Positions 53,499 to 62,375 of a stretch of 64,000 bases of DNA are shown here, one piece after another. The stretch comes from Hyaloraphidium curvatum SAG 235-1 (Eukaryota; Fungi; Monoblepharomycota): positions 62,001 to 126,000 of the forward strand of contig JAIVFI010000013.1 of NCBI GenBank assembly GCA_025558095.1. The letters are read 5' to 3'. The position numbers and the translations under genes were made by a program. Below the pieces are notes generated by a model. That model worked only from the letters and a program-made list of their open reading frames with translations. It searched no databases and was not told the origin of the DNA. The first letter of the stretch is position 1. Each line of letters starts with the position of its first letter.

Positions 53499-53768
53499 TT
53501 GGGACGGGGGCTCGGGGGCCCGGATCGGGGATGCGCCGGCGCGCTGTTGGGTTCCCCCTGCTGCATGTGCTTCGTCTCGAATCGATCTCCGTCGCATTCT
53601 CGGTCCCGATGATGGATGCAGATTGCACGGTCGTGTTGGCCTCGACGATCGCGATCGGGGATTCCCTCAGCCGCCGCCAAGGCGCGCCAAAGGACGTTGC
53701 CACAGATGACTACAACGCACAACTTCACCACTTCGAACGAGCCAAACCGACCCGACACCCCTAGAGCG

Positions 53769-54839
53769 ATGGCACCCATGCGCTGGCACCTCCCCGCGCT
53801 CGTCGCGGCCGCGCTCGCCGTGCTCCTTGCCGCGCAGCCTGCGTGCGCGGCCCCCGCAGCGGTCAACCCGTGCTTCTACCTGCACTGCTCGACCGGCTGC
53901 TGCTCCGAGAGCGAGGGCGGCTGCGTGCCGTCCGACCGCTGCTTCATCGTTGTGCTGCCGGGCGGCGGCGCGGAGCGGCCGGCGGGCGTGCGGCCAGCGG
54001 TGCCCGCGCCGGCCGGCGGGCCGTGCGGCGCGTCGGACGCCGACCACTGCCTGACCGGGTGCTGCGTGCGCGGCGCGTGCGCGGCGCCCGACGCGTGCTT
54101 CGGTGCGCAGGCCGCGCCGGTGCGGCCCGACGGCGCCCGCTGCTTCGCGCACGCCGCGTGCGCGTCCGGCTGCTGCGACTGCTCGCTGCCGTCCGCCGCG
54201 GACGCGCCCGTCGCCGCCACGTGCGCGTGCGCGCCCCGCGAGCGCTGCTTCGGCGCGCCGGATGGCGAGCCGCTGGGCAGGCCCGCCGGCGCAAACTGCT
54301 CCGCGTCCGGCGTGCAGTGCGCCTCCAGCTGCTGCGTGGGCGGCTCGTGCGCGCCGCACGCCGCCTGCTTCGGCGCCGGCGCATCCCCGGCACCCGCCGG
54401 CCCCGGCGCAGCGTGCGCCTCGGCCGCCGGCTGCGCATCCGCATGCTGCTTCAACTCGCGCTGCTCCCCCCCCGGCCTGTGCTCCGCCGCCGGCCCCGCC
54501 TCCGCAGGCAGGCCCGGCGGCGCAGCGTGCTCCTCCTCGGGCCCCGAGTGCGCCTCGGCGTGCTGCCTCGGGGGCGCCTGCGCCGACCACGCGGCGTGCT
54601 TCGGCGCCGGCGCCGGAGCGCTGTCCTGCGTGCAGGGGGCCGCGTGCGGCTCGGGGGACGGCTGCGACTCGGGGTGCTGCATCAACGCGCGGTGCTCGCC
54701 CGGCGCCCTGTGCATGGGAGCCCCGGGCGGGCGGTGCGGGGGGGCCGCGGATTGCCCCGGGGACGGGTGGATGTGCACGGGGGGACGGTGCGTGGTGATG
54801 CCCGGCGAACCGCTGCTTCCGGCAGTCTGGCGGGGGTGA
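53769..54839 (+). CDS. Secreted protein of tandem C-C-CC-C-C (knottin-spaced) modules
   Basis: Signal peptide, then seven C-x-C-x3-CC-x-C-x5-C units and a 4-Cys terminal unit. Intronless. Confidence 0.8.
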   Translation: MAPMRWHLPALVAAALAVLLAAQPACAAPAAVNPCFYLHCSTGCCSESEGGCVPSDRCFIVVLPGGGAERPAGVRPAVPAPAGGPCGASDADHCLTGCCVRGACAAPDACFGAQAAPVRPDGARCFAHAACASGCCDCSLPSAADAPVAATCACAPRERCFGAPDGEPLGRPAGANCSASGVQCASSCCVGGSCAPHAACFGAGASPAPAGPGAACASAAGCASACCFNSRCSPPGLCSAAGPASAGRPGGAACSSSGPECASACCLGGACADHAACFGAGAGALSCVQGAACGSGDGCDSGCCINARCSPGALCMGAPGGRCGGAADCPGDGWMCTGGRCVVMPGEPLLPAVWRG

Positions 54840-55263
54840 GGTGGCTCCACAGCCTGCTTTTCCTCGCGGATTCCTTCCTCTCTATGAAGTGAAACTACTG
54901 GAAACTTCGACACGTTGCACGGCGCGAAGATGCGATGATTGCATTCACCGCTCCTGGTGCCCAAACCAGGCGTCGAATATAGCCTTGCTGACCGTGCTGA
55001 TGAATCTACCCACACCTCCTCCGCTTCCCCGTACGGGTCGAATGGGTTCGGTGTACTTTTCTATGCGTTTGGTGCCCAAGCAACCGCCCCGCCCGGGCAG
55101 GGGGGACTGGTGGCCTGTTGCACATCGCCGTGGACCGGACGAACTGCGTGGCCTTTTGTTCGCGCTCCGAACTTCCACCCCCCCGCAGGAGTCGAGAATT
55201 AGATGATGACCAGAATACATCAGGTAGAATTAGTGCCAAAGCCGTCGCCGTCCCCCGCACGGT

Positions 55264-56515
55264 TCACCCCGCCGTCGAGCACAGCACCGCGAAGGTGATG
55301 GCGGCCACCACCACCTGCACCCCCACCGAAATGTAGTCCCACCTCCTGACCTCCCTCAGCACCGACCTCGGGTCGCCCCGGGCCCACCTCCCCTCCTTCA
55401 GGAACTTTGGCGCCGGCCCCCACAGCGCGCCCTCCTCGGAGCCCGCGTCCTCGTCGCGCGCCTCCTTGCCCACCAGGGCGTGGCGCTCGTCCTCCTCCCG
55501 GTCCAGCGCGGCGTGGAACACGGCGTTGTCCCAGAGCACCTGGAGGAAGGTGAAGGTGACGAGGACGTAGGCGGTGATGTAGAGCTCGTCCATCAGCACG
55601 AGCCCCGAGACGATGGCGGGGTCGATCGAGGTCTGCTGCAGGAAGACGCAGGTGATGAGCGCCGTCGCGCACAGGCCGATGCGGAGCTCGACGATCTTGG
55701 GGTGCACGAAGAGGGAGCTCCAGGCCACGATGAGGACAAAGATCAGGGGCACGAGCTTCCAGGCAAAGTTGCTCTGGGCGCGGGCGATGGTGACGGTGAC
55801 CAGGATCGCGGAAAAGCGCTCCGAGGAGTTGCTGCCGGGGTCGCCGAAGTTGGTGCCGTAGTCGTGCAGGTACGGCTCGATGGTCATGGAGAGCACGCTC
55901 CAGCCCGGCACGACGATGGAGCGGTCGTGGCCCGAGTTCTTGGTGTCCGGGAGGAAGATGAGCTCCGACGCGGGGAGCTCGGGGTCCTCGATGACCAGCT
56001 GTAGTTTCTGCCTGTCCATCGGGAAGGAGCGGAGGTTGAAGGCCTGGTAAAAGGTACCCTGTACTTTGAGCTCCTGGTACTGGACGCCCCCCGGATAGAC
56101 GGCAGGCTCGTCCGATAGGCGATTGACCGTCGCCCCGCCGTCGATGGCGTTCACGAACTCCAGGGTTCTCGTGGGGTCCGTGAGGTTCCCGGACCACAAC
56201 GCCCACATGTAGACGGTCATGTCGACGTCGGAGGAGGCCACATCGAGGTCGTACTATCGAGCGAGGGGGGATTCAGCGGGAGAGCCTGCCGGGGGACGGG
56301 CCACCCACGATGTTGAGCACCTGCACGCCGATGGTCACCGTCGCGGTGTTGTTCGGCACGGCGGGCAGCGGCACGAAGTCGCCCGTCGCGGCGCGCTTCG
56401 TCGGGTGAACCGGCGCGGCCCCGTGCGGATGCCGTGCTGCGGCCACCGGCGGCGCCGCGCAGAGGGCCGCGGACAGCGCCGCCAGCGCCGAGAGGCACGC
56501 TCGGTCGAAGCGCAT
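55264..56515 (-). CDS. Cys-less pentameric ligand-gated ion channel (GLIC/ELIC-like Pro-loop receptor)
   Basis: Exons 56515-56309 and 56253-55264 (55-nt intron), 398 aa. Signal peptide, beta1-2 VTIGVQVLNI|YDLD, LEFVNA, Pro-loop FNLRSFPMDRQKL, VPGW and pre-M1 IAR. M1 KLVPLIFVLIVAWSSLFV, M2 ELRIGLCATALITCVF, M3 LMDELYITAYVLVTFTFLQVLW, M4 YISVGVQVVVAAITFAVL. Confidence 0.9.
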
Positions 56516-56686
56516 CGCGGAAGGCAGCCGCGGGTCGGTCCGCCGGCTTCCGGGTCGGGGCTTCGGTCTGGCCGGTCCGGCGCGGCTGAGCGGTTGGTGC
56601 GGGCGGTGCGGTTGATGACGCGATCGTCAGCAGATCTTGCCGGAGCTTCCGAACCTTTCACCAGCATGAAGCTACACGGTGTCAAT

Positions 56687-57530
56687 CTACCCGGTCCTCC
56701 GCTTCTTCCTCGGGGACACGGGGCCCCCGTGCCGCCGGTGGAACTCGGCCACCGCGTGCCCAGCCCCTGTCAGGTTCTCCAGCGGCTCCCAGGTGACATC
56801 GTTCCATCCCTTCCACTGGACGCGGTACTCTGCCCCGCGATCCGTGTGCCGGCACGCCGAGATCTTGCCGACCTCGTACTCGATGTCCTCCTCGAGGTCT
56901 TCCTCCTCCGTCGTCGCCCGTTCCACCTCGAGAAGCAGCCGGTCGAGGGCCTCGAAGCAGGATCCCGGCCGGCCGAGCACGTTGGTCTGGTTCGGCTTGT
57001 GCGCCATCCCCAGGGGCCCGTCCGAGTGCAGGAACCCGTGGATGCGGAAGTTGTTCTCCCCTCCCTCGTAGGCATCCCCCGCGTGGACCTGGTCGCCGCG
57101 GAACACAAGCATGTCTCCCGTCTCCAGCACCACCCGCTCCACCCTGCCCCCCGAAGGCAGCGTGAACGGCCCCTCCCCCCGCGTCGCAAGCGCCTCGTGG
57201 ACGTTGCGCCACGAGTGCGGCCACTTGCGGACCGAGGTCCTCTGCACCGCGACGAAAAACAGCAGCGGCGCATCGCGCGCCGCCGTCGTCCGCGCCATCC
57301 ACTCGCCCGACTCGGCGGAGGGAAACGCCAGATCCGTGTGCTTGGGCTGCGCCGCGCAGCCCGGCCTGCTCATCAGCACGTCGACGTTGCGCAGCTCCCT
57401 CCCCGGAAACAGCACGCCCAAGACCCCCCTTAGCACGGCATGCAGCTCCGCGAAGCCGGGCGGGCCTGGAGCCTCCTCCCGTCGCCGGGGAGCGTCCTCG
57501 CCCCGTCGATGGCCTGGAACACGGGGGGGT
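56687..57530 (-). CDS. 2OG-Fe(II) dioxygenase (PhyH-like fold) fused to a C-terminal chromodomain; 5' end frameshifted or truncated
   Basis: AQPKHTD (HxD), GDMLVFRGDQVHAG (distal His) and NFRIH (Arg), then YEVGKISACR...EYRVQWKGWNDVTWEPLENL (chromodomain) and a basic tail PRKKRR. The upstream PVFQ...GDGRRLQA segment is in another frame. Confidence 0.72.
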
Positions 57531-61152: not shown

Positions 61153-62375
61153 GCGTGTAGGAGTAGCCTTGATGTCGCTTCGGTGTGCGGAGTGTAGGGG
61201 ACTTCGGAGCAACAACCTTTATTGAAGCAGAGAGAGCTCCACTCAAACTTCTCCAATCGATGGGAATGCCGTTGGTGCGAGCTACATTTGGCGCGCAATT
61301 GCTCAAGCTTTGTTCTTCTCGCTCATCTGTTTCGGGACTTGCAGTGGCTTTGTCAGCCCGCACGCAGCGCGTCCAGTCATCGATCGCAAATCGCAAACAC
61401 CGCTACCGCCGCCGGCCTCACACTGTCCCGACTACTCCGTCCTGGAATTTCGATCCAATAGCAGAGCTTAACAAGCGCTCAGAGGACGGATACCGGCTGC
61501 CGGGCGACAACTGGGGAAGCCAGTCGGGTGGTCTGCGAGGCCGTCCGGCCGCCCCGGACCAGACCCAGGTGCAGAGAGCACGGAGCCGGAGGGGAGGCTC
61601 CCAACGCAAGCGCCGCGGGCACTTGTGGCGGTCGCGCCCTCCGGCACCAGGACTCTCAAGCTTCGGGCTCGGGGAACACGACTCGCCGACGAAGATGGCT
61701 GCCGCGCCGCCTTTTTGCGGGCGGTAATGTATGTCACGATGCAGCTCGGAAGCTCGCCGCTTACTCCAGCGATATGCGGCACGGGACGGGACTAGGCAGA
61801 GCTGGAGGCGCCTCTGGGAAGGCAAGGTCGACGTCAAACAGATGCCTCCGGCGCTTCGTTGGACAAATTGAACACATACGTGGCCGCTGAAATGCTGGTG
61901 CTCATCTTCTTCCGATCTACGCTGGAGACGCCCGCGGGGTAGAGCACCGAGCCCACGACGACTCCATTCTCCTGCGGGGTTTCAAGCAGCAGGGAGCTCG
62001 GATGGGATGCCGATGCACTTGCGAACGCCCCATCCCGCGGCGAACGACGCCGGGCGGCGAGACGATGGGGAGCGGTTAAACCCCCTGAGCGGGTCACGTG
62101 CAGGGGTCCGGCGAGCACATCTGCCGCCCGCGCGGACTAACGTGCCCTCGAGTACAAAAGGCGGCTCCCCGCGCTCCCTCTGCCAGCACGCCAGTTCGCG
62201 CCTGAAGCAAGTCTCCTCGTTTGTTGACTGCGGTGGGTCCGCCCATCCGGGTCGGGCAGCGCGCGCTGACGATGTCTCCCTGCCCGCCCCTGCCCCCTCT
62301 CGGCTTCCCTCGCTCCCCCTTCATCCCGACCGCTCTCTCCTACTCCCGCCCGTCGCTATATCAGCCCCCACGAAG

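Follow-up and report, generated by a model that had tools for sequence, protein, structure and literature searches.

A bacterial-type pentameric ligand-gated ion channel gene and its paralogues in the fungus Hyaloraphidium curvatum

The stretch of DNA analyzed here, called the window below, comprises 64,000 nucleotides of Hyaloraphidium curvatum SAG 235-1 (assembly GCA_025558095.1, contig JAIVFI010000013.1, forward-strand positions 62,001 to 126,000) and contains on its minus strand a two-exon gene for a subunit of the pentameric type of ligand-gated ion channel (pLGIC, or Pro-loop receptor). The NCBI taxonomy places the organism, an aquatic fungus of an early-diverging lineage, in Fungi, Monoblepharomycota, Hyaloraphidiomycetes. 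Exon 1 (56515-56309, 69 amino acids) encodes residues 1-69, which according to translation and an AlphaFold 2 (AF2) model comprise a signal-peptide-like hydrophobic helix, a poorly modelled linker and the start of strand beta1. Exon 2 (56253-55267, 329 amino acids) encodes residues 70-398 and is followed by the stop codon at 55266-55264. The spliceosomal intron between them (56254-56308, minus strand) is 55 nucleotides long, has GT..AG ends, contains a TAG and is not a multiple of three in length. The start codon at 56515 is the first ATG after an in-frame stop, and the 5' untranslated region extends at least over 56516-56595, the upstream limit of the spliced contig described below. The joined translation is 100% identical (word-indexed protein search) to a public protein of 398 amino acids, P0001, named hypothetical protein DFJ74DRAFT_666672 [Hyaloraphidium curvatum], which has no Pfam domain and no function on record. 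The exons were searched separately, and full-length searches used P0001.

The intron is absent from an assembled public contig. This 1903-nucleotide contig of run X1, the only public run containing the stretch, covers 56595-56309 and 56253-55000 with zero mismatches and omits exactly 56254-56308. The ends of the omitted segment are CT..AC on the plus strand, equivalent to GT..AG on the gene strand. An earlier reading of the window from its letters alone (the sequence-only reading) had called exactly this intron and taken it as an argument against contamination, and the contig bears it out. Word depth in X1 is 410 across the channel gene versus 0-6 (about 5) across the next gene. The RNA label of X1 is a guess; we read the run as a transcriptome because a DNA run would have retained the intron, and because depth drops past the channel gene. 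One contig from one study shows that a spliced form of the channel gene exists, and nothing further. The GC content is 0.66 in the channel gene versus 0.669 in the window, without a local break, and 0.95 at third codon positions (GC3). The gene sits within a 759-kb contig along which GC is uniform at 61-77%. The channel gene is intact, embedded in the host genome, interrupted by a host-type intron and transcribed.

The encoded protein has the complete pLGIC architecture with four transmembrane helices that the sequence-only reading had described. The AF2 model of P0001, built on the alignment of 114 relatives, has a mean predicted local distance difference test score (pLDDT) of 88.8 and a predicted TM-score (pTM) of 0.80. 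It starts with a hydrophobic helix (residues 5-19) and a stretch with pLDDT <50 (residues 26-35), and continues with a beta-sandwich (strands 46-227) and the helices M1 (229-248), M2 (257-278), M3 (289-331) and M4 (364-397). On the minus strand of the window, the extracellular ligand-binding beta-sandwich (residues ~45-228), also delimited by profile alignment to the extracellular domains of the bacterial channels GLIC and ELIC, occupies 55777-56383, a span that includes the intron. M1 lies at 55717-55776, with the kink proline P238 (100% conserved) and, upstream of the helix, the pre-M1 arginine R227 (93% conserved). The M2 pore helix, placed by the model and by profile alignments, lies at 55627-55692; the M2-M3 loop after it includes D280 and P281. 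M3 (55468-55596) extends beyond the membrane into the cytoplasm, and M4 (55270-55371) is covered by a deep profile that aligns through M4 of ELIC and GLIC. The intracellular M3-M4 region (residues ~313-363, 55372-55524, pLDDT 65-78) is acidic in its first half, in agreement with the acidic loop of about 50 amino acids noticed earlier. A two-copy complex prediction (residues 45-398, run without the relatives' alignment) scored 0.01 versus a mark of 0.32, a result that counts neither for nor against assembly.

One element of the earlier description is dropped. A pro-region ending in KR had been proposed after the signal peptide, but the candidate Kex2-type site (T-K-R at 39-41) is not conserved in the paralogues: the closest one, on contig C16, has GR at the site, no similar sequence is seen in the other copies, and the model has low confidence here.

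The Pro-loop lacks the flanking cysteines of animal receptors. Its tip, F146-P147-M148-D149 (56014-56025, minus strand), was read directly and aligns with Y119-P120-F121-D122 of GLIC; the full reading continues with R150-Q151. The Cys-loop cysteine positions are occupied by Q139 and L153, so that the strict metazoan-type cysteine pair (13 residues apart) is absent, as the sequence-only reading had said of its FPMDRQ motif. Judged by these residues, the channel protein is of the Cys-less, prokaryote-like type. The pre-M1 arginine is the salt-bridge partner of the Pro-loop aspartate. Among 114 relatives P147 is 100% and D149 92% conserved, and W187 (in beta9), R227, P238 and P281 align to their equivalents in GLIC, ELIC and GABA-A receptors. 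All seven signature residues of the superfamily (F146, P147, D149, W187, R227, P238 and P281) are kept, with 76-100% conservation among relatives; they correspond to the list of most conserved superfamily positions in PMC4795631 (Table 1), which includes the [F/Y]PxD Pro-loop with its invariant proline.

Superfamily membership is supported by family profiles and by structure, and is missed by Pfam. P0001 matched Neur_chan_LBD with 15.5 bits (E 0.012), below the cut-off of 26, Neur_chan_memb was not reported, and the separate exons gave no Pfam match even at E<=1. We attribute the miss to a limit of sensitivity and not to loss of features, because the Pfam model is weighted to animal sequences. 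A single-sequence phmmer search of P0001 against PDB sequences found ELIC with E 7e-7, and, at a weaker 0.003-0.03, GLIC and glycine receptors. A four-member family profile reached 6e-23 for GLIC chimeras and ~1e-16 for GLIC, ELIC and GABA-A beta, and the profile of 114 relatives reached 1e-41 for ELIC and 4e-38 for GLIC, aligned from beta1 through M4. All 500 counted Foldseek matches against the PDB had E<=0.001, and every one among the matches listed was a pLGIC, the best structural match being GLIC (E 2e-19, TMt 0.72). ESM features of P0001 were closest to Neur_chan clusters. The gene encodes a real pLGIC subunit with the fold of the superfamily.

The register of the pore helix is the same in two profile alignments. 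R260 (93% conserved) falls on the 0' arginine of both the GABA-A alpha1 transmembrane domain and ELIC, which gives E258 at -2', R260 at 0', T266 at 6', I269 at 9', F273 at 13' and D280 at 20'. The by-eye alignment of the sequence-only reading (E at -2', T at 6', I at 9') is thereby reproduced. A register shifted by one residue (E258 at -1', L268 at 9'), obtained from the single-sequence phmmer alignment to ELIC, was overruled by the deeper profiles and by the family consensus of leucine at 9'. Of the 114 relatives, 104 (91%) carry D or E at -2' and 86% carry L at 9', with T predominating at 6'. The Pro-Ala-Arg anion motif is absent. An acidic intracellular ring without Pro-Ala-Arg is the pattern of cation-selective members such as GLIC and nicotinic receptors. 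With the acidic ring at -2' (E258) and no such motif, the predicted channel is probably cation-selective.

The ligand pocket resembles that of ELIC in part. In the alignment based on 114 relatives, Y84, E158, Y201 and F216 correspond to ELIC Y38, E131, Y175 and F188, four agonist-site positions that contact acetylcholine and, according to the authors, amine agonists (PMC3316889). Measured against the full site list of the ELIC-like amine-gated class (Y38, E77, I79, N103, E131, F133, Y175, F188), these 4 positions are kept, and the position of the acidic ring is -2' instead of -1'. Departures from ELIC are found at F133, replaced by P160, and at N103, replaced by E130. The beta9-beta10 hairpin (loop C; 55813-55872, minus strand), located by conservation and by alignment to ELIC, carries the subfamily motif YLHDY..FG..F. 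Loop C and pocket positions are highly conserved in the subfamily (Y201 89%, F205 83%, G206 100%, E158 93%, and an aromatic residue at position 216, among the 114 relatives), and the best conserved non-core extracellular positions coincide with ELIC ligand-binding sites. The acidic and aromatic pocket formed by Y84, E130, E158, D159, Y201 and F216 suggests that the channel may be gated by a small cationic (amine-like) agonist.

P0001 has features in common with both ELIC and GLIC. ELIC (Erwinia/Dickeya chrysanthemi) is the best native sequence match; it is also a compact protein without the cysteines, agrees in fold and topology, and has R at 0', T at 6' and an aliphatic residue at 9' in common with P0001. 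However, identity is low, the pore glutamate is at -1' in ELIC versus -2' in P0001, and ELIC has a minimal M3-M4 turn instead of a region of ~50 amino acids, and neither a eukaryotic secretion signal nor introns. The proton-gated GLIC (Gloeobacter violaceus) has both E at -2' and I at 9', as in P0001, which suggests cation selectivity, but is only ~15% identical and does not have the loop C motif YLHDY..FG of the subfamily.

The gene is not unique in its genome, which holds six copies of the same subfamily and about ten animal-like pLGIC genes. A six-frame search of the assembly found the six subfamily loci each on its own contig: the gene studied here and copies on C16 (68% identical to it), C27, C15, C12 and C31 (32-38%). 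Compared over 238 codons, the studied gene and the C16 copy have a ratio of nonsynonymous to synonymous substitutions (dN/dS) of 0.30; therefore, both are under purifying selection. The paralogues have no intron position in common, and two are intronless. The studied gene is interrupted after residue 69, where the C16 copy has no intron; the latter instead has a 60-nucleotide GT..AG intron after the M3 motif FTFLQ. The C12 copy is interrupted after residue 290 of its own protein, the match to the C31 copy is in three pieces, and the C27 and C15 copies are single open frames. These unshared positions fit an intronless ancestor.

Two observations concern the annotation of these copies. For the closest paralogue (locus L002:1477-2720, G000:C16, ~688275-689518), the public model P0002 of 241 amino acids is truncated: it begins at an internal methionine and runs into the 60-nucleotide GT..AG intron (L002 2386-2445), and the C16 locus encodes a full-length subunit including its own signal peptide and M4. 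In the C27 paralogue (L003:1486-2676, minus strand), the C-terminal 36 residues (M4) give a weak Pfam TMIE match (17.7 bits, cut-off 27), which is most likely due to chance.

A second class of pLGIC genes in the same genome is animal-like. At least nine further loci pass the Pfam Neur_chan_LBD cut-off (58-88 bits); they lie on C6, C39, C1 and C37 and often form adjacent pairs. Their matches (loci L020-L024 in G000) are at C6:45168-45806, C6:47131-47763 and C6:863219-863872 on the plus strand, at C6:861959-862591 and C39:459761-460393 on the minus strand, and at C1:280170-280802(-), C1:281617-282228(+), C37:166327-166713(-) and C37:167882-168319(+). Characteristic motifs are an FPFDxQ Pro-loop without flanking cysteines, WTPD in loop A and a P-E-R start of M2 ('VPERLG'), and introns are found in the M2-M3 region. 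The C39 copy has GABA-A delta and glycine receptors as best PDB matches (1e-23) and also matches eukaryotic Atlas clusters. This class and the studied gene belong to the same superfamily and organism and are both Cys-less, but the animal-like class differs by passing the Pfam threshold and by its WTPD and P-E-R motifs, and in the tree a very long branch separates it from the clade of the studied gene. Taken together, Hyaloraphidium has ~16 pLGIC genes (6 bacterial-type and ~10 animal-like) in at least two unrelated classes.

A very divergent pLGIC-like frame was also seen at G000:C4:70063-70899(-) (L025), with an FPFDRQ Pro-loop and 'GGRMSIILTLLLT' as M2. Only a search with the subfamily profile revealed it, and in the tree it sits on an extremely long branch (3.5).

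The closest relatives of the studied gene outside Hyaloraphidium are found in plainly bacterial settings. An exhaustive profile search of 1.84 billion representatives gave 7142 matches at E<=1e-3 and 338 at E<=1e-30, and the closest non-Hyaloraphidium proteins have 352-371 amino acids and bacterial surroundings. Few relatives (3, 8 and 6 matches) came out of the word-indexed protein search, with H. curvatum as the sole named eukaryote, a result that says little on absence elsewhere. A scan of bacterial and archaeal contigs, which relied on two peptide patterns and therefore yielded few loci, gave 4, three from Chlorobiaceae metagenome-assembled genomes (MAGs) and one from a Planktothrix MAG. 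On a 307-kb contig the relative's gene adjoins galK-galT-mutarotase-LacI, and further bacterial neighbourhoods are represented by a SpoIVA contig, an ApbE/ADH contig and an MscS/AraC contig. Members of this bacterial subfamily (the Chlorobiaceae MAGs JAAXXL010000015.1 and JBAWYL010000003.1, the Planktothrix MAG, and the metagenomic proteins P0007, P0014 and P0003) are 33-38% identical to the fungal gene over residues ~40-320 and have the motifs YLHDY, PGW, IED and ATALLT.VFLQQ in common with it. In contrast to the fungal gene, they have 352-371 amino acids, short M3-M4 links, operon-like contexts and no introns.

A few longer relatives appear to be eukaryotic. Four proteins (P0010, P0020, P0180 and P0181, 416-487 amino acids) come from contigs with fragmented, intron-like gene calls, where the neighbours include a squalene epoxidase, a mannosyltransferase of fungal type, a hybrid histidine kinase and an ionotropic glutamate receptor. 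Of the flanking proteins, two show 63% and 54-76% identity to genes of H. curvatum. From the fragmentation of the gene calls and the similarity of the flanking genes, we infer that the four may derive from uncultured relatives of Hyaloraphidium. After Y298 in M3, eukaryotic members have 90-220 residues versus a median of 54 in 108 other relatives. Counts of N-glycosylation sequons did not separate eukaryotic from bacterial members.

As an observation on its own, Logan run SRR26194948 (L018:6001-9450 and L026) contains an uncultured, probably Hyaloraphidium-related eukaryote with two bacterial-type subfamily members, one of which lies beside a gene for an ionotropic glutamate receptor (Pfam Lig_chan) that runs on the opposite strand.

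In the phylogenetic tree, the eukaryotic members are nested among bacterial proteins. The tree was calculated by maximum likelihood for 49 rows (LG+C20 model with posterior mean site frequencies, PMSF), with support given as ultrafast bootstrap/SH-like approximate likelihood ratio test (SH-aLRT); published protist Cys-less sequences (Jaiteh et al.) were outside the sampling. The rows are mostly metagenomic; 8 were confirmed as bacterial by gene neighbourhood, and the contig of P0016 is too short to classify. The eight eukaryotic rows, which come from H. curvatum and from environmental sequences, form one clade (85/91), the nearest rows are the bacterial P0007 and P0014 (97/97), and this assemblage falls inside a clade with Chlorobiaceae (98/94), followed by the proteins of the SpoIVA and MscS contigs. 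Bacterial rows thus surround the fungal clade, and the nesting is unchanged when the animal-like pLGICs of H. curvatum are used as outgroup. The sequence-only reading had left horizontal acquisition and ancient retention side by side; the gene tree fits the former better. The most economical history would be a single old transfer from a bacterium to the Hyaloraphidium lineage, after which the gene was duplicated, introns were gained and the intracellular loop grew.

The occurrence in a fungus differs from previous surveys. No pLGIC was detected in Fungi by Jaiteh et al. 2016 (PMC4795631), a statement repeated in PMC8634148, and the sequence-only reading had likewise described the family as generally considered absent from fungi. 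Our search of the open-access literature, with subscription journals outside its scope, found no paper reporting a fungal pLGIC or linking these channels to chytrid fungi. Cys-less Pro-loop receptors occur patchily in other eukaryotes (Monosiga, Capsaspora, diatoms and haptophytes), with a few protist sequences placed among the prokaryotic branches (PMC4795631). The H. curvatum gene is like these protist and unicellular-opisthokont receptors in being eukaryotic, cysteine-less and patchy, although the survey had none from Fungi (PMC4795631). The host and the history of the gene are unusual; the protein was already public as a hypothetical protein, the superfamily is very well known, and this is not a new kind of system.

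The best overall explanation, which we regard as likely, is that the gene encodes a pLGIC subunit, captured from bacteria and then domesticated, whose channel is gated by a small ligand. By homology, the signal peptide would place the beta-sandwich domain outside the cell, and five subunits, either identical or a mixture of the six paralogues, would surround a pore lined by M2. A small ligand would bind at the subunit interface beneath loop C, and binding would be relayed via the interface of Pro-loop, pre-M1 arginine and M2-M3 proline, so that the hydrophobic gate at I269 (9') opens. The tree suggests that an ancestor of Hyaloraphidium acquired the gene from a bacterium, and that duplication, independent intron gain in different copies and lengthening of the intracellular M3-M4 loop may have followed the transfer. 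A more elaborate version, to which we give somewhat less than even chances, is that a compact bacterial pLGIC was captured by a fungal lineage and made into a eukaryotic receptor family by addition of a secretion signal, introns at new sites and a de novo M3-M4 domain of 50-190 residues, beside an older animal-like Cys-less family.

Several points weigh against the capture of a small-ligand-gated bacterial channel. The curated Pfam threshold is missed (15.5 versus 26 bits), and RNA support consists of one assembled contig from a run with a guessed RNA label. Support for the eukaryotic clade is only moderate (85/91), and for 4 of the mostly metagenomic rows the eukaryote-like status is based only on the fragmentation of gene calls and on the resemblance of flanking genes. 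As P160 takes the place of the ELIC loop-B aromatic F133, the predicted pocket would not be a copy of that of ELIC. What is proposed for the gating stimulus, the selectivity and the stoichiometry is based on homology and on a small number of residues.

The alternatives concern the origin, the gating and the reality of the gene. The same family might descend by vertical inheritance from a Cys-less pLGIC of ancient eukaryotes, with loss from almost every other fungus, its bacterial neighbours in the tree reflecting eukaryote-to-bacterium transfer or an artefact. Frequent loss has been proposed for the patchy pLGICs of unicellular eukaryotes (PMC4795631), the ~ten animal-like Cys-less pLGICs kept in the same genome indicate a lineage that retains old channel genes, and the copies are fully host-adapted in composition, so that any transfer must be old and hard to distinguish from inheritance. 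We nevertheless consider vertical inheritance improbable, as several supported nodes of bacteria from different phyla (Chlorobiaceae, SpoIVA contig, gal-operon contig) lie between the eukaryotic clade and the outgroups, the clade does not join the animal-like class of H. curvatum, no intron position is common to the paralogues, two of which are intronless, and H. curvatum is the only named eukaryote recovered in the word-indexed protein search. It is hardly credible that the locus is bacterial contamination, an assembly chimera or the relic of a dead gene, even though its nearest relatives are bacterial and its public annotation lists neither function nor Pfam domain. Contamination and recent insertion are excluded because the GT..AG intron is spliced out in the transcript contig and because GC and GC3 (0.95, within 759 kb of uniform 61-77% GC) are host-like; five paralogues on five other contigs, an intact frame, the dN/dS of 0.30 and the retention of all signature residues also argue against these readings.

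A true pentameric channel could also respond to something other than an amine: it might be opened by protons (like GLIC), closed by divalent cations (like DeCLIC) or anion-selective. The best Foldseek match, GLIC, is gated by protons and likewise carries E at -2' and I at 9', and P160 stands where strong cation-pi binding would require the loop-B aromatic. Calcium modulation is described as common in the pLGIC family (PMC9897478). On the other hand, few positions of the subfamily are as well conserved as loop C and the pocket residues, as expected of a conserved ligand site, and anion selectivity is opposed by the missing Pro-Ala-Arg motif and by the acidic -2' residue in 91% of relatives. We regard these forms of gating or selectivity as unlikely, and prefer the captured bacterial channel with a small ligand as stimulus.

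At least one fungal lineage has a sizeable pLGIC repertoire (~16 genes), in which the bacterial-type subfamily is invisible to Pfam and hence annotated merely as hypothetical. As a compact, eukaryotically processed relative of ELIC and GLIC, the protein is a tractable target for structural work. The family may provide a dated example of the domestication of a bacterial channel, with intron gain and growth of the intracellular loop, and a starting point for work on chemical sensing in a little-known planktonic fungus that has no flagellum. If capture beside an older animal-like family is true, H. curvatum would offer a natural experiment on the origin of the intracellular domain of neurotransmitter-type receptors, and fungi as a kingdom would not simply have lacked pLGICs.

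Both sides of the channel gene carry further open frames. The spliced X1 contig continues ~625 nucleotides beyond the stop codon (window 54638-55263) and overlaps the 3' end of a convergent Cys-rich frame (53616-54839, plus strand), which indicates either a long 3' untranslated region or two convergent transcripts fused by the assembler. On the other side, the adjoining frame 56687-57436 (minus strand), which the sequence-only reading had called a dioxygenase-chromodomain fusion, ends in a chromodomain-like segment, and its X1 depth is ~5 versus 410 for the channel gene.

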